Shown here: piece after piece, positions 31,801-64,000 of the stretch
How positions within the stretch are numbered: the stretch's first letter is position 1
Layout of the letters: every line of letters starts with the position of its first letter
Assembly (NCBI GenBank): GCA_965644495.1
Contig: CBFFSA010000002.1
Coordinates: 496,001 to 560,000, forward strand
DNA length: 64,000 nt
From: Perkinsela sp. CCAP 1560/9
Lineage: Eukaryota; Protista; Euglenozoa: Kinetoplastea
Reading direction: 5' to 3'
Notes under the pieces: generated by a model
Seen by the model: only the letters and a program-made list of their open reading frames with translations
Databases searched by the model: none
What the model was told of the DNA's origin: nothing
Translations under genes and position numbers: made by a program

Positions 31801-33539
31801 AGAGTACTACGCCAAAGTACTACATAACCTCCGCGGGAAGGAGATGTCACGGTTCGCTTCAATGATCATGGTTGGATACTCACCTCCGAGTCTCGTTAAC
31901 ACCCGCTCCTGGGGAAAGTCTGATGGACACGAGACGTGCTGCATATGTCGGGAAAGAAAACAAACACTCAGACACATCTTAGCATCGTGCACTGCATCAC
32001 TCCTTCAGGGAAGATACACATATAGACACAACGCAGTCCTGAAAGTATTGCGTGACCACATAAACGAATGTAGTCACGTCCGAGAGAAATGCTTTGATCT
32101 ACCAGATTCTCCAAACGAATATTACCCACCACAATGGCTTGCAAACTGTACCATTATCACCACCTACGTAAACACGCTAGATCCGCATGTAGCGTTGAAT
32201 CAGTCACGTTGATTTGATAGAGAGTATGGCGTTTGATACAGAATATGACCGCTCGCATCAAGGGTACTGCCTCTCGTGGAATTGCCATGGCAGTTGGATA
32301 CAGAGTCGGTCTGGATGACTACAGTTCCACGTGTGGACTCTGACTCGCTTTTATTATTACGTTTTGTAAGTGTGGTATCCCTGCATCTTAGATGATGATG
32401 CGTAAATTAGTGGAACCCTAAATGACCAGTGCCATTGAGTCGTAGTTACTCGTTTAGTGGAGGGTTTCTAGGTTTTAATGGAGCGGTCTTTCCTAGAGTA
32501 GTTCCACTAGTAAGAGTAGTAAGAATGCTAATTCAGTATAGATTCCTAGTAATACAAGTAGAGACTAGTTGAAGTAGTACAGTTCTGTATAGTTCTGGTG
32601 GTTTAAACGTGTGTATATGTAGGGTTGCCGTCCGAATAATAGACGTGATAAAGATTCCGAGAATGATGGTGTGCTCGGCTTCATTCATTGGACCAACGAC
32701 TCACTGTATCTCAATTTATTTGTGTTAAGTTAAATTATTGCGAGCGAGGCTTCATACACATCTTGTCGTGTATGTATCCTTCCTTTCAAAGGATGTCTGT
32801 ATCAAACTTGAATCATGTATCACGGTGTCTGCATAAATTATACGTTTGCAGTTGCAATATTTCGTTTCGTATTTACTATTACTAACTTTATTTATTTACT
32901 ATAGTAACAGTATTTATTTTGGTTTTCCTAATTTTTCTCTAAATGAATTTCCCGACAGCGTATTGAAGCCTTTTCGACATTCGACTTGTTCGGATGCTGG
33001 AGAGACCACTTCTTGCGTGTCGTCGGCCCCTTCAGTGGGATGTGCCTGAGTATCCATGAATGTGCCTTTTTTTTCTGGCCTTCATGGTGCCAGGCCTGCC
33101 ATAGCGCGTCTACTGCGCCGTGATAATGACGGGTTGGTGGACTCTCTCTGGGTAATCCCAGAATAGGACTACCAACCCTCACAATATGCGGCCAGACGGT
33201 TGGGTTCGCCTCGAGGATGGATCGGAGTATATCTTGGAGCTCACCTGTCCTTGGGAGGAGAATTTCGGCCTTGCCCGAGAACGCAAGCGTTCCAAATATC
33301 AAGAAATTCTTCGCCACCGCCAAGCCACAAATCAACGCACCACTCTAACAACTCTCGAAGTCGGCGCACGGGGAAAACTCAGCGACAGCACTCTCGACTT
33401 ATCTTGGCTGTTTAAGGGTGAACATACCAAATTGATTAGACAAATGCGGCAAGAAATGATTAACGCCGCGATGAGTGCCCCTTTTAAAATATATAACATG
33501 CGTAATACACCCGTATGGAATACCGCTAGTACTGCTTGA
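28861..33539 (+). mobile_element. Decayed RLE non-LTR retrotransposon (HERO-like) coding region; 3' UTR probably continues to ~36985
   Basis: RT: SAPGRD, NWRPIAL, QKGF, DLSNAFGSVPH, GVLQGDTLSPILF, AFADD. CCHC CxxC..TLRHILASC, RHN; RLE RPD...LELTCPWE...KRSKY...LEVGARG. Stop at 31063-31065, frameshifts, and a 1-kb insert. Confidence 0.85.
32153..33185. mobile_element. 1033-bp non-coding insert with DIRS-like internal complementary region and 3' hairpin
   Basis: Precise removal rejoins TGT ACC|ATG CGG CCA GAC (CTMRPD). Termini ATT...AAT; 33102-33140 is complementary to both termini. Confidence 0.7.
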
Positions 33540-58482: not shown

Positions 58483-58734
58483 GTTCGTCTGCTCTATTTT
58501 ATGCCAAAAAGGTGAAATTTCTTAAAAATCTTGCAATTGACGTTTTTGGCCCTCTTACCATTTCACGATACTGCTAATTATGCAGGAAACAATATATACA
58601 ATATTATTTCATTATAACCATCTCCGTAAACACGCTAGATACCGGTTCCAAGCCCGGCGTCGCTTCTGTCGCATTTGCTAGCTAATAGAAACGTGCTAGC
58701 TAGCTCTGAAGCGAAGTGTGAGGACGGGAAAAAA

Positions 58735-58773
58735 AATCTTTAACGATAAAGATACAGTTTCTGTACCTTGTTG
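58735..58773 (+). other. Spliced-leader exon-like 39-mer (left TSD copy), no GT donor
   Basis: AATCTTTAACGATAAAGATACAGTTTCTGTACCTTGTTG contains the conserved kinetoplastid SL core and ends TTG, but is followed by AATT. Confidence 0.75.
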
Positions 58774-58777
58774 AATT

Positions 58778-61700
58778 CCATTTCATCTCTTTCCGAGGTA
58801 CGGGTTAATTTTTATGTCTGGTATCATCCCCCCCGCAGACACACTTCCTCCCATAGACGACAACAGCGGAAATCCGGACCACGAAGCCGAAGCCATGGAG
58901 ACGGACGACAAATGCTTAGAAATTAATGGCAGAACTCACCGACCGGGGTCTTGGGACCAATTTAAAGGAAACGAACATTTAATCACGGGGACGAGCACCT
59001 ACCATGAAGACGTTTACACGGGGACGAGCACCTACCATGAAGACGTTTACACGACCCCCATCCCTCAGAATATTTCTGAAGATTGGATCCGCCGAACGAA
59101 CGCGATCGTAGGTGGGATTAATGCAACACCGGACACAGGTCACACGGAGGTCGAAAATGAAGAGATGCAACACTCCGCTGTTATCAGGCAAGTAACGCCA
59201 GCGAAGAAGACGAAAGAGGCTTTGAATGCTACACAGCATCTAAGTACACCACTCAAAACTGCTCTATCCGCCCAAGCACGTAGCAATGAGGACATTAAAG
59301 GTCACTCCAAGAAAACCCCTACTCCACGGAGAAATAAGCTCATCCGATACCGGGTAGACCCAGAGACACCTTCACTCTTGCATCCTTATGAACTTATTCC
59401 GGGTCCATCTCAAGAGCAACCAGGAAGAAGACACGAAACCCAGAATATTGAAAACGCTGGCGTTAGCCTCGCTGAGCCCAACTCATTGTCCCAAGGAAAG
59501 TCTGCCGCGCTCCGAGAGTGCCCGGCCCAGGGATGTTCATGGCGCAGTCCGTCGCATGGCGGATCCTGGCAAGCCTTCTATAACCATGTCGCATGCCGGC
59601 ACGGTAACAGCATCCCTAATGAATGGTGGTACAGAGAAGGCCGTTTTCTATGCACCTCATGCGGACGCCACTACGACAACCACAAACGATCATCGCACAC
59701 ACACAGCTGCAAAGGAACGAAAACCGTCGCGCTCCTTTCTCCCGAACTTCTTACTCCACCCAACGAAGTGAGCACCGCACCAACACCAGAGAACACCAAC
59801 TTTGAGCTCCCACCTCTTCCTTCTGTCTGCTCTCTTCAGCTGAGTACGTGCAAAGACGTGCCTTATCGTTGCCGCCAGATCTGGGAAGAAATCCTCTCCT
59901 CCGCCATTCGGAACGCGGTCTCTGAAAACTCCTTACAGGCATGGACGCTTCTGGCCATGCTTCCCAAATGCGTTTTACCAGCTCCGCATCGAGGGGGCCG
60001 CAAAGGCCACATGGCATATGCCTCACATGCGTATAAATGCATGCAGCGTTGGGCGGAACAAGAGTACTCGGACCTATGGAGCGAAGCAATTGTAGCCTGT
60101 CGAAAAAAGCAAAAGTCCCCAACGGAATTCCCTGACGAAGACGAGAAGGCAGCGATTCGAGCAGAACTCCTCGTCCGCCACGGCGAGCTCTCTAGAGGGT
60201 TGGCCTCCCTAACGTCAGATCCAATGGCGCCTGACGATGACGAGACATTTGAAAAATTGCTAGAAAAACACCCCCGCCGTCTTCAAATTGACTCGTGCGA
60301 AAACTGCCCGCCTCCGAACTGCGCTCCACTGGAACTTGACGAACGCGAAGTTGCAAAGACGCTGAAGAGCTTCAACAGGGGTTCCTCTGCCGGCACTATG
60401 GGATTACGCCCAGAGCACCTACAGGCAGCACTGCTCGTACACGGAAATGACTTTCTCCGATCCCTCACAAAGCTAACAAATCACCTCCTAGCTGGGAAGG
60501 CACCCTCTGAAGTACAGGCGCACTTTGCAGGGGCGCGCTTATGCGCCCTATCAAAGGGCGAAAATGATGTTCATCCGATCGCTGCCGGTGAAACCCTTCG
60601 GCGATTAGCGAGCAAAGCCGTATGCAACGCAATCCGACCCAAAGCGAGCGAGCTCTTTGAAGGCAAACAGTACGGAGTGGCAGCGCCAGCCGGGGCCGAA
60701 AGAGTCATTCACATGTGTCGCCTGGCCATGTCGTCCAATATGGAAAACCCGAACTTCGTCATGTGCAAAGTGGACCTACGTAACGCTTTCAATAACGTAA
60801 GCAGGGCTGCCTTCCTTCCACTAGTACAGGAATATTTCCCGGAACTCTTCCCTTGGATCAATTGGTGCTATTCCGACCCCAGCTCTCTTACCTACGGGGC
60901 CCGATTCATCTCCTCCGAGGAAGGAGTACAACAGGGCGATCCCCTAGGACCATTGCTCTTCTCGTTAGTGGCCCTGGAGCTCTCAGAAGCCATTAACCTT
61001 CAAACTGATATTCCCGCCCAACTCTGGTATCTCGACGATGGCGTCCTCGTTGGCCAGGCGCAGGAAGTTAGAGACGCCCTAGACACGATCGCCCGAGTAG
61101 GACCTCAATGGGGCTTGCATCTCAATACGTCGAAATGCGAAATTATTACTTCCCCCAGCTCGGCCCACCAGGCTGATTACTTCCCAGACATACCCGACGA
61201 GAAGATCAATTCGCAGGGGAACTTTGACATACTAGGGAGTCCTGTAGGATCCGCCGACCACTGCTCTGCTTATCTTCTTTCTCACGCCCTAGAACCAGCC
61301 GAGGATACCCTCGATGCCATCACCAACATTCAGGACCCCCAGGTCGCACTTGCCCTAATTCGTCAATGTGCGGGGTTCTGTCAAATGGTGTATGCCATGA
61401 GAAGTACGCCCCCACAGTCCCTGATTCACCTTTGCTCCCGTTTAGACGACTTTCTCATGACCGCTATAGAGGCAATCATCTGTCCTCTGGACAGGTCAGC
61501 ACAATCTCAAGCACAGCGACTGAAGCGCCATGGGGGATTAGGTCTGAGATCCGCAGCTCTCCACGCCTCCGCGGCTTACGTTGCATCCGTCGCCTTTGCC
61601 TCTGCCAAAGATTCCTGGGATCCCACAGACGCTGAAGGTTTCTCGGAGGCCATCCTCGATATCAATCAGAAGGCCGGCACTGCTCTCCTCGATCCCCGAG

Positions 61701-63318
61701 GTCGTGTTCTCACAACTCCCAACGCCCCATGCGAGAAGGCCCTGAGCGCGCCGTACTCCTACCGGAAGAGAAGGCGCCCTCCGCCAGGGATTGATCCTCA
61801 CCCCCCGGACGAGCCTCCGGGACATATTCTTCGTACGACTTCCCGCACGGCCAACACACCCACGGATGCCTACCCACTCTCGACTCCCCTCTATGGTTCT
61901 GAAGAATGCCAGGACATGTTAACCCCACAGTGGCCCAAAGGGAAGATTCCGCGCCAGCGGGTAATCAGTTATGCTATTGCAGCCCATGCGTTTTCCCAGG
62001 AATATGAGACAACTGACGCACGAACCCGTGCAAGGTGGATCTCCCAGTGTGGCACGGGAGCGAGCAGCTGGGCCTTTGTGACTCCTTCGAAAGACCTTGG
62101 GCACGCCTTTACCCCCACACAATTCCGAACTTTGGCCCGTTGGTGGTTAGGCGTGGACATCTACCATGAAGATAGCACGTGCCCCATGCCGAAATGCTCG
62201 CTCCCCCTTGACAGCAAAGGGGACCATGCACTGTCTTGCAAACATGGCCATGGTATTGTGACCAGGCACAACGCTGTTACGGACCAGTTCACGGACGTGT
62301 GCAGTCGATCCCGCCTCGCCCCTCAACGAGAAAAGAGTCTCGGGAACAGGGGCCCAGGTGGGGCCCTCACTAGACCTGGCGACATATACTTGCCCAGCCT
62401 TTTTCTTGGAAATCCCATTGTGCTTGACTTCGCGGTCACCCATGCTCAGCAATTAAAATATACGGACAAAGTCCGAAACGCTAGCTGGGTTGCCGCGGGG
62501 TCATTTGCCGAACATTATTCCTCAATGGAGAAGGGCAAGCAGCGTCGAGAAGCCGTAGAAGCAGGATGCGACTTTACGGCCATGGTGGTCGAAAGTTATG
62601 GCGCCTGGAGCCCCAGCGCTTCAGCCGTGCTCCGAAAAGTCGGTGAGAGGTGTTCGCACGCCTCGGGGGGTCTACTTTCGGAAGGTGAGGCAACGAGCCG
62701 AATCTTCGCTGAACTAAACATAACCCTTATGCGCTTTCAAGCGCGCATGATGGTTGCTCGTTCACCTTCCGAAGACCCCATCGCAACTCTGGAGGAATAG
62801 CCTCCAGAGCGGCCCGAGGCCGATCGAGCCGACAGTGCCTATCCTCACGCCTCGCTTTCACGAGCAAGGTACCCCAATGTGAGACAGGTATGGATTCGGA
62901 ATGTTCATCCGAATCCGGCGATCAAAACCCAACTTCGTGACCGTGCCGCTGTCGGCACATGCCCGCGCCTGCGCCTTCCCGTATAACAAGGGAAGGGTTC
63001 CCAAGCCAGGCCGTGGAGAGGTCGAGAGACCCGGTCCGAAGCGCGCACTGCTGGAAGAAGGAGTGGAGCACGCGCGGATTGATTTCTGGGGGGAAGTGAG
63101 GGAAAGCGGAGGGCAAAGTTTGGAAGGCGCGGATGGATGCTCGGGGGGGGGGAAGTGAGGGAAAGAAGCGGGTGAAGTCGGGAAGTCGCGGATGGTTTCT
63201 TTGGGGGGGGGGGGGAGAAGGGAGAGAAGCGGGCGAAGTTGATAAGGGCGAAGTAAAGTAAGTAGGAAAGTAAGTAAGAAAGTGATACCGTACATTTATA
63301 GAAAGTTAAAAAAAAAAA
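58778..63318 (+). mobile_element. Full-length CRE-clade RLE non-LTR retrotransposon
   Basis: Identical TSD at 58737-58777 and 63319-63359 (41 bp, up to 49 with flanking As); poly(A) at 63308-63318; single intact ORF. Confidence 0.92.
58814..62800 (+). CDS. CRE ORF: LsmAD-like domain, Zn fingers, reverse transcriptase, Zn knuckle, RLE endonuclease
   Basis: C2H2 CPAQGC..HVACRH; RT PIAAGE, DLRNAFN, QQGDPLGP, YLDD; C..C..HALSC..RHN; RPGD..LDFAVTH; VVESYGAW. Confidence 0.93.
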   Translation: MSGIIPPADTLPPIDDNSGNPDHEAEAMETDDKCLEINGRTHRPGSWDQFKGNEHLITGTSTYHEDVYTGTSTYHEDVYTTPIPQNISEDWIRRTNAIVGGINATPDTGHTEVENEEMQHSAVIRQVTPAKKTKEALNATQHLSTPLKTALSAQARSNEDIKGHSKKTPTPRRNKLIRYRVDPETPSLLHPYELIPGPSQEQPGRRHETQNIENAGVSLAEPNSLSQGKSAALRECPAQGCSWRSPSHGGSWQAFYNHVACRHGNSIPNEWWYREGRFLCTSCGRHYDNHKRSSHTHSCKGTKTVALLSPELLTPPNEVSTAPTPENTNFELPPLPSVCSLQLSTCKDVPYRCRQIWEEILSSAIRNAVSENSLQAWTLLAMLPKCVLPAPHRGGRKGHMAYASHAYKCMQRWAEQEYSDLWSEAIVACRKKQKSPTEFPDEDEKAAIRAELLVRHGELSRGLASLTSDPMAPDDDETFEKLLEKHPRRLQIDSCENCPPPNCAPLELDEREVAKTLKSFNRGSSAGTMGLRPEHLQAALLVHGNDFLRSLTKLTNHLLAGKAPSEVQAHFAGARLCALSKGENDVHPIAAGETLRRLASKAVCNAIRPKASELFEGKQYGVAAPAGAERVIHMCRLAMSSNMENPNFVMCKVDLRNAFNNVSRAAFLPLVQEYFPELFPWINWCYSDPSSLTYGARFISSEEGVQQGDPLGPLLFSLVALELSEAINLQTDIPAQLWYLDDGVLVGQAQEVRDALDTIARVGPQWGLHLNTSKCEIITSPSSAHQADYFPDIPDEKINSQGNFDILGSPVGSADHCSAYLLSHALEPAEDTLDAITNIQDPQVALALIRQCAGFCQMVYAMRSTPPQSLIHLCSRLDDFLMTAIEAIICPLDRSAQSQAQRLKRHGGLGLRSAALHASAAYVASVAFASAKDSWDPTDAEGFSEAILDINQKAGTALLDPRGRVLTTPNAPCEKALSAPYSYRKRRRPPPGIDPHPPDEPPGHILRTTSRTANTPTDAYPLSTPLYGSEECQDMLTPQWPKGKIPRQRVISYAIAAHAFSQEYETTDARTRARWISQCGTGASSWAFVTPSKDLGHAFTPTQFRTLARWWLGVDIYHEDSTCPMPKCSLPLDSKGDHALSCKHGHGIVTRHNAVTDQFTDVCSRSRLAPQREKSLGNRGPGGALTRPGDIYLPSLFLGNPIVLDFAVTHAQQLKYTDKVRNASWVAAGSFAEHYSSMEKGKQRREAVEAGCDFTAMVVESYGAWSPSASAVLRKVGERCSHASGGLLSEGEATSRIFAELNITLMRFQARMMVARSPSEDPIATLEE

Positions 63319-63355
63319 TCTTTAACGATAAAGATACAGTTTCTGTACCTTGTTG
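63317..63355 (+). other. Spliced-leader exon-like 39-mer (right TSD copy)
   Basis: Identical to 58735-58773; followed by a pyrimidine-rich ~40-nt spacer and an ATG at ~63396. Confidence 0.75.
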
Positions 63356-63708
63356 AATTATTTCTCCTTTTCTTTCCTACAACATCTTCTGGACCATGGG
63401 AGGGCACCCCCCTCAAATTCTCACTCTGTTGCCGGCAACCCTCCTCCCTCTCTCATCCCATCATCCCCTCGCGTCATGTCTCCCCACCTCTTCCTCCCGC
63501 CTCTGCGCGCTCGTTGTTCTTCTGTCTTTCTCTCTTGCGTCCCCCACCCCCGTGCCAGCAGCCCAAAGTATTGTATACTTGCTCACGGGGTGGGGGCAGA
63601 GTTCCAGACGGATGGGCTGCGGCGTCGTTTTCCCTCGTCTCCGCGTCCGTCCCGCCATGTCCCTCTTCCCGCTTTTTGCCCTTGGCGCGACGGCGTCTTT
63701 GCGCTTCG

Positions 63709-63852
63709 TTACCTCCACGTCTCCCACCCTCGTACAGCAACTCAAAGTATCTGATACTGCTAACGGGGTGGGAGCGGAGGTCACCTCCACATCTCCCACC
63801 CTCGTACAGCAACACAAAGTATCTTATACTGCTAACGGGGTGGGAGCGGAGG
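63709..63852 (+). repeat. ~70-bp tandem duplication
   Basis: ACCTCCAC.TCTCCCACCCTCGTACAGCAAC.CAAAGTATCT.ATACTGCTAACGGGGTGGGAGCGGAGG occurs twice, with a diverged partial copy at ~63545-63600. Confidence 0.8.
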
Positions 63853-64000
63853 CTCTGGACCACATGGGCGCTCGCGCGGACGAGTCGGTATAGGGTAGGG
63901 GGTAAGGACGGGGATGGATGAGAGGGTTAAGGGAAAGTGTGGAAAGTGGGGAGTAAGTACGGTGAAGTGGGGAGAGTAAGTACGGTGAAGTGTGAAAAGT

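Follow-up and report, generated by a model that had tools for sequence, protein, structure and literature searches.

Retrotransposons associated with the spliced leader (SL) have previously been known in kinetoplastids only from SL RNA gene arrays, and SL-tagged retrocopies have been described mainly from dinoflagellates. In R2, a 28S-specific element with a restriction-like endonuclease (RLE), target-derived sequence at the 5′-end of the RNA is thought to aid 5′ joining. The known members of the CRE clade (SLACS, CZAR, CRE1 and CRE2) reside in SL RNA gene arrays, between nucleotides (nt) 11 and 12 of the mini-exon (PMC5814959, PMC12278014). Here we analyse a stretch of 64,000 nt from Perkinsela sp. 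CCAP 1560/9 (contig CBFFSA010000002.1, positions 496,001 to 560,000, forward strand; hereafter the window), which towards its end carries an element, 58737–63318, that is headed by a copy of the SL. This element resembles the CRE clade in having a single open reading frame (ORF), a reverse transcriptase (RT), a C-terminal RLE, Cys/His motifs and poly(A), and in an integration that is tied to SL sequence (PMC12278014, PMC5814959). It differs from that clade in that its copies lie outside SL RNA genes and start with a complete SL of their own, and in that the junctions observed fall at nt 8/9, at nt 33/34 or at the 5′ edge of SLs that themselves head other retroelements. We consider it probable that 58737–63318 is an R2-like element copied from an SL-bearing RNA and lying in a stack of like-built units, the SL at its 5′-end being most likely a fossil of that template RNA. 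Because the SL recurs on near-identical copies in unrelated flanks, is cut back to variable extents and is found as relics joined at an AG, it belongs to the RNA that was reverse transcribed.

With the SL-tagged retrogenes of dinoflagellates the system has in common retroposed units whose 5′-end is an SL encoded in the DNA, tandem relic SLs formed by renewed trans-splicing at an AG inside the encoded SL, and the puzzle of why single SLs predominate (PMC6050394, PMC5585692). Unlike in dinoflagellates, however, the host is of kinetoplastid type with a 38-nt SL, and the tagged units are mainly autonomous or non-autonomous retrotransposons that target SL DNA and are stacked head-to-tail, rather than cellular retrogenes. 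Among solved structures, those of R2 proteins match the RT and the C-terminal nuclease of the element best, but the target here is the SL and not 28S ribosomal DNA, no 5′ ribozyme was found with Rfam, and the SL represents the 5′-end of a mature RNA and not the remnant of a co-transcript. No report of SL-headed retroelements in kinetoplastids was found in the literature, the coverage of which was incomplete, so that this is weak evidence for novelty. Here a single 21-Mb kinetoplastid-type assembly holds ~550 SL copies without a GT donor, and these head autonomous R2-like elements as well as RT-less passengers, units that home to each other's SL/poly(A) junctions. The encoded SL is at the same time a built-in marker of RNA-mediated duplication in a euglenozoan.

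Layout of the locus and protein of the RT element

An exact 49-nt direct repeat (58729–58777 and 63311–63359, spacing 4582) frames the element, each copy consisting of A8, 37 nt of the SL (TCTTTAACG...CCTTGTTG) and AATT. An earlier note on this DNA had taken the repeat for the target-site duplication of a CRE element and had described, in order, an SL-like exon with AATT in place of the GT donor, a pyrimidine-rich leader of ~40 nt and an ATG; these observations hold, as both copies of the repeat read AATT and the second runs into a pyrimidine-rich leader of 40 nt with an ATG behind it at 63396. Continuing into AATT without a GT donor, neither SL copy of the window qualifies as a bona fide SL RNA gene. 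Chance is ruled out as the source of this repeat and of the repeated hallmark at 58610 considered below, and the exactness of the 49 nt does not discriminate between a target-site duplication and two abutting SL-headed units. The 4.58-kb element between the copies comprises one ORF of 1328 amino acids (aa), a 3′ untranslated region (UTR) of ~0.5 kb and an A11 tail. The features of the locus are as follows.

58610..58736 (+): unit 0, a structured 5′ hallmark of ~115 nt, from a dispersed and unrelated retroposon family, then CGGG and A8
58737..58773 (+): genomic SL copy heading the RT element, SL nt 2–38, identical to the SL RNA gene exon except at nt 2
58774..58813 (+): 40-nt pyrimidine-rich 5′ leader, AATT-CC-ATTTCATC..., where sister copies have AATTTTTTCT-ATTTCATC
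58814..62800 (+): intact single ORF of 1328 aa, with N-terminal Cys/His motifs, RT, and C-terminal CCHC and RLE
60560..61183 (+): RT domain, residues 583–790 (Pfam PF00078), which aligns to Bombyx R2 8gh6
62180..62602 (+): CCHC knuckle and PD-(D/E)XK-type nuclease core, from conserved residues, an AF2 model and Foldseek
62801..63307 (+): 3′ UTR, a structured module (~62817–63060) and then G/A-rich 59-nt repeats (63084–63246)
63308..63318 (+): poly(A) tail of the RT element, A11
63319..63355 (+): SL copy heading unit 2
63356..64000 (+): unit 2, RT-less and SL-headed, with leader AATTATTTCTCC... and ATG at 63396

At nt 2 the SL copy at 58737 has T, versus A in the SL RNA gene, and the resulting A-T-C start is also present in probable RNA contigs of run X5. 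Unit 2 continues for ~57 nt beyond the end of the window, where it closes with an A9 tail of its own, and more SL-headed units come after it (L071 6311–8476). The ORF of the RT element carries an exact 33-bp in-frame tandem duplication (11 aa; 58984–59049), one copy of which is skipped by contigs of three DNA runs, so that it is copy-specific or polymorphic. Two stretches of the 3′ UTR (62855–62870 and 62990–63005) are complementary to the 3′ part of the SL (CAAGGTAC, AACAAGG), the first of them not being conserved in unit 3, an SL-headed unit past the window.

Residues 583–790 of the ORF match RVT_1 (PF00078) with an E-value of 3.9e-16 and 59.8 bits against a cut-off of 29.6 (Pfam), and in sequence the proteins of solved structure closest to it are those of R2. 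Across 40 homologues the nuclease residues C1123, C1128, H1138, C1142, R-H 1151–1152, E1173, R-P-x-D 1187–1190, D1205 and E1260 are invariant or nearly so. When the AF2 model of the C-terminal 279 aa (pLDDT 92.6) was compared with the PDB by Foldseek, the top 7 matches were all R2 retrotransposon proteins, the sole matches at E <0.003, followed by cap-snatching and restriction endonucleases (PD-(D/E)XK). Taken together, the RVT_1 match, the R2 sequence relatives and the CCHC/nuclease fold identify an R2-type (RLE) non-long-terminal-repeat retrotransposon, apparently intact and full-length at 58737–63318. Its nearest named protein relatives are RTs of sponges and dinoflagellates; the names SLACS, CZAR and CRE are absent among the 120 protein matches listed, and the protein atlas returned 'RVT_1' clusters only. 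From the earlier designation of the insert as a CRE, the non-long-terminal-repeat element with RT and RLE can be retained, whereas the fixed insertion site in SL genes that marks CRE is not shared (0/14 copies of the RT family lie within GT-bearing SL genes); the label is right as a functional analogy, for an SL-associated RLE element. An RT of 38% identity on metagenome contig L078 has no SL in the 243 nt available upstream, and inspection by eye recognised nothing in the ORFs of another SL-headed pair (L011).

The host SL and its encoded copies

The true SL RNA genes lie elsewhere, as two tandem 297-bp units at G000:C1:661 kb (C1:661319 and C1:661616) that read ...gttAACTTTAACG...CCTTGTTG directly followed by GTATGAGAAGC..., that is, the SL exon and then a stem-forming GTATGAG intron. 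Their exon is the same over 37–38 nt as the window SL, which bears out the earlier view that the window sequence is a GT-less copy of the host SL, and these genes, which the note had asked for, do not continue with AATT. Contigs of run X5 (records 23–25), whose RNA origin is a guess, join the SL (window 58736–58773) to three different sequences, one of them starting AATT, and so give weak evidence that places the 3′-end of the SL at ...TTG. Genome-wide, a 23-mer of the SL occurs in 557 copies (0 in the reversed control), among which 271 retain the 5′ part and 183 read SL and AATT, while SL and GTATG are joined in seven exact and two near matches and the promoter flank upstream of the SL RNA genes has only 2 copies. 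A 19-mer of the SL had no match in the literature searched. A search with Rfam (E up to 1) of the SL gene locus and two hallmark loci returned 5S rRNA only, with no ribozyme and no SL RNA family. The 5S rRNA gene (99 bits) lies ~400 bp from the SL RNA genes on the opposite strand (L077 7043–7161, equivalent to G000:C1:662043–662161), and a tRNA-like sequence is located between the two SL RNA gene units.

For the 5′-terminal 183 nt of the element, 13 close relatives were found, with 98–100% identity. Five close copies begin with the full SL followed by AATTTTTTCT and ATTTCATC, their flanks being unrelated, and nine units of the tandem arrays on contigs C32 and C83 begin with poly(A), TGTTG and AATTTTTTCT, the TGTTG before each unit being the last 5 nt of the SL. 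A sister subfamily of the RT element begins with the SL and AATTATTTTCT, and a family of 63% identity in a second assembly is SL-headed as well. For the leader of unit 2, ~20 copies were found genome-wide, every one preceded by the 3′-end of the SL and none by AG, and the AATT(A/T)TTT start is conserved across families with different bodies. What these poly(A)-tailed units encode at their 5′-end is a donor-less mature SL. The earlier note had the CRE gain its SL from the target, a proposal that is not supported, since the other copies of the family carry the SL and AATT(T/A)TTT in unrelated flanks, and at least one copy (C22) has an A/T-rich non-SL 5′ flank and, directly after its poly(A), again sequence that is non-SL.

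The extent of the encoded SL varies from copy to copy. In the 'AATTATTTTCAATTTTG' family it starts from nt 11 at C1:1773746 and from nt 15 at C1:2019986 (different flanks), in the 'GTACATTTT' family from positions that range between nt 8 and 15, and among all sampled copies from nt 2, 3, 5, 7, 8, 10–12 and 14–16. Untemplated or odd 5′ junctions were also seen, such as poly(A) followed by GGGGAG and the SL from nt 7, or SL nt 9–24 followed by the SL from nt 5 or 7. Variable cut-back and untemplated junction bases argue that these 5′-ends arose by target-primed reverse transcription of an RNA starting with the SL.

Near the 5′-end of an SL-headed copy, AGs occur only inside the encoded SL, after nt 16 and nt 22. 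A full SL 3′-end is joined to SL nt 23–38 at 8 loci (junction nt 22/23) and to SL nt 17–38 at 2 loci (junction nt 16/17), in at least 7 different downstream contexts that include unit-2-like and GTAC families, with 0 in reversed controls. Furthermore, when pairs of SL 3′-ends no more than 22 nt apart were sought without bias, 23 matches were obtained, and the same two junctions dominate among them. Since the relics are joined exactly after the internal AGs, encoded SLs have been re-transcribed, trans-spliced and retroposed again, and the relics are the kinetoplastid counterpart of the relict DinoSLs (PMC6050394). Such forms make up a few per cent at most of the SL copies (10 exact AG-joined loci and 23 pattern matches versus 557).

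The SL of kinetoplastids bears a cap 4, in which the cap-proximal nucleotides are modified. Both promoter-bearing genes have A at SL nt 2. Of the copies sampled, 24 keep the SL from nt 3 or earlier, and 22 of these are retrocopies; in the 21 copies starting at nt 3, the base at nt 2 is T in 20 and G in 1, and a further copy has A. A larger listing likewise has T as the commonest base at nt 2, with some A, G and C and with variable preceding bases, and a probable RNA contig of run X5 starts A-T-C, so has T at this position. We infer that T or G at nt 2 reflects mis-copying of a modified cap-4 nucleotide by the RT, an unassembled variant of the SL gene being the alternative; T or G in place of A would then be natural evidence on how a reverse transcriptase reads hyper-modified cap-proximal bases.

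Stacking and the origin of the window copy's SL

From the hallmark onwards, the units follow each other head-to-tail as hallmark mini-unit-A8, SL-RT element-A11, SL-unit 2-A9 and SL-unit 3-A18. Unit 3 has an ORF and, before its A18, a 3′ module like that of the RT element; it is followed by a small SL-less unit (A11) and then by SL nt 1–21, A9 and SL nt 9–38 heading a further element. In the latter, nothing but poly(A) has been inserted into an SL, of which nt 9–21 (13 nt) are duplicated (L071 8404–8476, equivalent to G000:C2:561404–561476, ~1.4 kb past the window); this structure points to one pair of nicks, at nt 8/9 and nt 21/22. Poly(A) is joined to nt 9 at 4 loci, and remnants of the SL (nt 1–21, or nt 9–18/24) precede full SLs at other loci. 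Among the sampled copies, poly(A) abutting a complete SL is commoner than a junction inside the SL, an arrangement consistent with priming in an A/T run immediately before an SL that the machinery recognises.

The 3′ module of the RT element is 70–78% identical to the 3′ regions of units whose poly(A) precedes other SLs. Since these upstream units share the 3′ UTR module of the RT element, the superfamily stacks on itself, and in a stack of like-built units the 49-nt 'target-site duplication' is simply the A-run, the SL and the shared AATT leader start of any two neighbours. SL-directed integration, as claimed earlier, is upheld for the superfamily, which integrates at or in SL sequences, but with the parts exchanged: autonomy lies with the RT element, and the SL-headed units downstream of it appear to be its passengers. 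Mechanistically, an RNA template with the host SL at its 5′-end would yield a DNA copy that starts with the SL and ends in poly(A). Stacking would proceed by endonuclease cleavage and target-primed reverse transcription on SL DNA or on the A-run before an SL, the one demonstrable event appearing to combine a bottom-strand nick at SL nt 8/9 with a top-strand nick at nt 21/22, and RT-less units may ride on the RT element via the common 5′ and 3′ modules.

The earlier note had envisaged a promoter-bearing terminus at 58610 linked to a pre-made SL exon, which was hit by an SL-specific CRE that generated the 49-nt duplication and so acquired an SL. The exact repeat agrees with this, as do the succession of GT-less SL, leader and ATG and the fact that the terminus is a real repeated 5′-end (58610–58640 matches 32152–32182 at 28/31 positions, as had been reported). 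We nevertheless regard the model as very improbable, because the recurrent part of the terminus, 58610–58666 only, is found at ~20 other loci genome-wide without an SL within 600 bp, an absence of linkage that the note itself had set against its model, because other copies of the RT element are already SL-headed in unrelated flanks, and because an A-run belonging to the hallmark unit stands between it and the SL. With the hallmark followed by CGGG and A8 and only then by the SL, their adjacency is one more stack junction, as opposed to a unit of promoter and exon; the SL-headed element and the 58610 terminus are unrelated. Overall, the earlier interpretation is partly supported. Several points do weigh against our own preferred reading, in which the element was copied from SL-bearing RNA. 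The window leader (AATT-CC-) differs from all sisters (AATT-TTTTCT-) only in the 6 nt behind AATT, and the 181 nt downstream of this difference are 100% identical to the sisters; such a pattern, two changes within 6 nt next to 181 identical bases, suggests a junction event, and a true long duplication may underlie the window copy. Most contigs of the DNA runs have the sister form, with a TTTT insertion and C>T at 58775–58779. In addition, the SL copies whose flanks were studied number 43, some of them segmental duplicates, the RNA origin of the run X5 contigs is a guess, and neither the RT family (14 copies) nor the unit-2 family (~20) contains an SL-less copy with AG before AATT, so that ordinary trans-splicing of assembled copies cannot alone regenerate the junction of SL and AATT. 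On the first of these grounds, a target-derived or chimeric 5′ SL for the window copy deserves consideration, although we think it rather unlikely. The element would have inserted into the SL of unit 2 with nicks upstream of that SL and 4 nt behind it, an improbable but conceivable course, and would then have left a true 41–49-nt duplication, a slightly 5′-truncated complementary DNA and two extra C's at the joint, a combination that we likewise do not expect. The leader is unique exactly at the presumed junction (AATT, CC, ATTTCATC) with full identity downstream, the superfamily cuts SL DNA, and known SL-specific elements insert within the mini-exon (PMC5814959); yet the demonstrable cleavage yields 13-nt duplications, SL remnants end at nt 18–24 and not 4 nt beyond nt 38, many junctions of poly(A) with a full SL need no long duplication, and units 2 and 3 show a like 'repeat' whose first base is T versus G, so that there was no duplication there. 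A target-derived SL thus fits the mapped nicks worse than simple insertion at the A-run does, and even if correct for the window copy it would not rescue the promoter model. The joint of an empty site, skipping 58778–63359, was absent from three DNA runs, which proves nothing either way.

The lack of an AG-acceptor master bears on how template RNA came to carry its SL. Copies with the SL joined to GTACGGG, the product expected from trans-splicing at a strong polypyrimidine-AG that lies 20 nt ahead of the ATG, were likewise sought and not found. Two options present themselves: masters may escape the assembly, e.g. within collapsed SL arrays, or the SL-headed copies may give rise to RNA from SL nt 1. 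Hidden masters in collapsed arrays could be driven from the SL promoter, as has been reported for SLACS. Under the other option, the SL-headed copies would themselves be source genes, with RNA that starts at or is processed to SL nt 1 through the SL and its AATTATTT leader, which we consider a distinctly doubtful proposition; in a variant that we view with similar scepticism, the source copies are located in unassembled arrays, where the promoter of an SL RNA gene precedes them, and obtain the SL without trans-splicing. Reuse in cis would account for the missing AG-acceptor master in two families and for the rarity of SL-relic tandems, and is consistent with the preservation of the leader start across families with different bodies; DinoSL has been proposed as a promoter on like grounds (PMC6050394), and trypanosomatid retroposons are known that have an internal 5′ Pol II promoter (PMC1874656, PMC8190864). 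The relics, in contrast, prove that at least some encoded SLs are read through and trans-spliced, and the variation of nt 2 between copies is better explained by renewed reverse transcription of a modified cap-proximal base than by inheritance. A promoter-bearing SL gene interrupted by an element, recognisable by poly(A) followed by SL nt 9–38 and GTATG, is also missing from the assembly. That the encoded SL is functional, with RNAs whose first nucleotide is precisely SL nt 1 and with the SL and AATTATTT serving as internal initiator or promoter as well as homing site, seems to us a long way from likely. Of the earlier note's proposal, SL-led mRNA formed without trans-splicing would persist in this form, as a hypothesis. 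If it were true, a whole superfamily of retroelements would get an SL 5′-end without trans-splicing in a host all of whose mRNAs are believed to depend on it. The regeneration of a single exact SL without an AG-acceptor master could reveal SL-independent 5′-end formation or a cryptic promoter under polycistronic transcription.

Other SL-bearing loci and the hallmark family

Tandem arrays of the RT element are located at G000:C32:53–70 kb and C83:8–21 kb (L036–L044, L076) with a period of ~3.99 kb, and their units are without ~0.5 kb of the ORF (element nt 1353–1862). Two loci, G000:C2:801570–801620 and C25:23932–23982, carry the SL with the start of its intron (GTATGAGAAG) and G at SL nt 2 (A-G-C) but not the promoter flank of the genes, and are probably retroposed unspliced SL RNA. 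That the 'GTACATTTT' class might be SL genes of a further type, equipped with a GT donor, was considered and rejected, as its upstream flanks all differ and the lengths of SL cut-back vary; the class represents one more family headed by the SL, and the GTAC with which its leader begins is fortuitous. At many loci (e.g. C1:1468280, C1:1543510 and seven on C16) the SL lies inside a larger repeat, ...ACGTACAATAA-SL-ATTATTTAC, the upstream flank of which is itself repeated >20 times, and record 24 of run X5, a probable RNA contig, reads through an SL copy with a similar flank; these loci may constitute an amplified SL-tagged retrogene or gene family.

The hallmark at 58610 (CATTATCAC...TAAACACGCTAGATACCGG...) has a conserved fold with 4 covarying pairs and no match in Rfam, and may represent a promoter of the Pr77 type or else a 5′ ribozyme. 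In layout it resembles the Pr77-hallmark retroposons (L1Tc, ingi and SIDER), dispersed elements with a conserved structured 5′ leader of ~80–100 nt (PMC1874656), differing from that case in that the 58610 hallmark family is not part of the SL-headed system. The GATACAG match at +145 in the insert at 32152, which the earlier note had suspected of being fortuitous, is a chance match given that the 7-mer occurs near expectation (7 and 4 times per strand in the window, against ~4 expected). Compared across 58610–58725, 32152–32190 and L050–L070, the hallmark spans ~95 nt and runs from CATTATCAC...TAAACACGCTAGATACCGGTYCCAAGCCCGGCG through a variable hairpin, in which the 4 covarying pairs lie, to AAGTGTGAGG.

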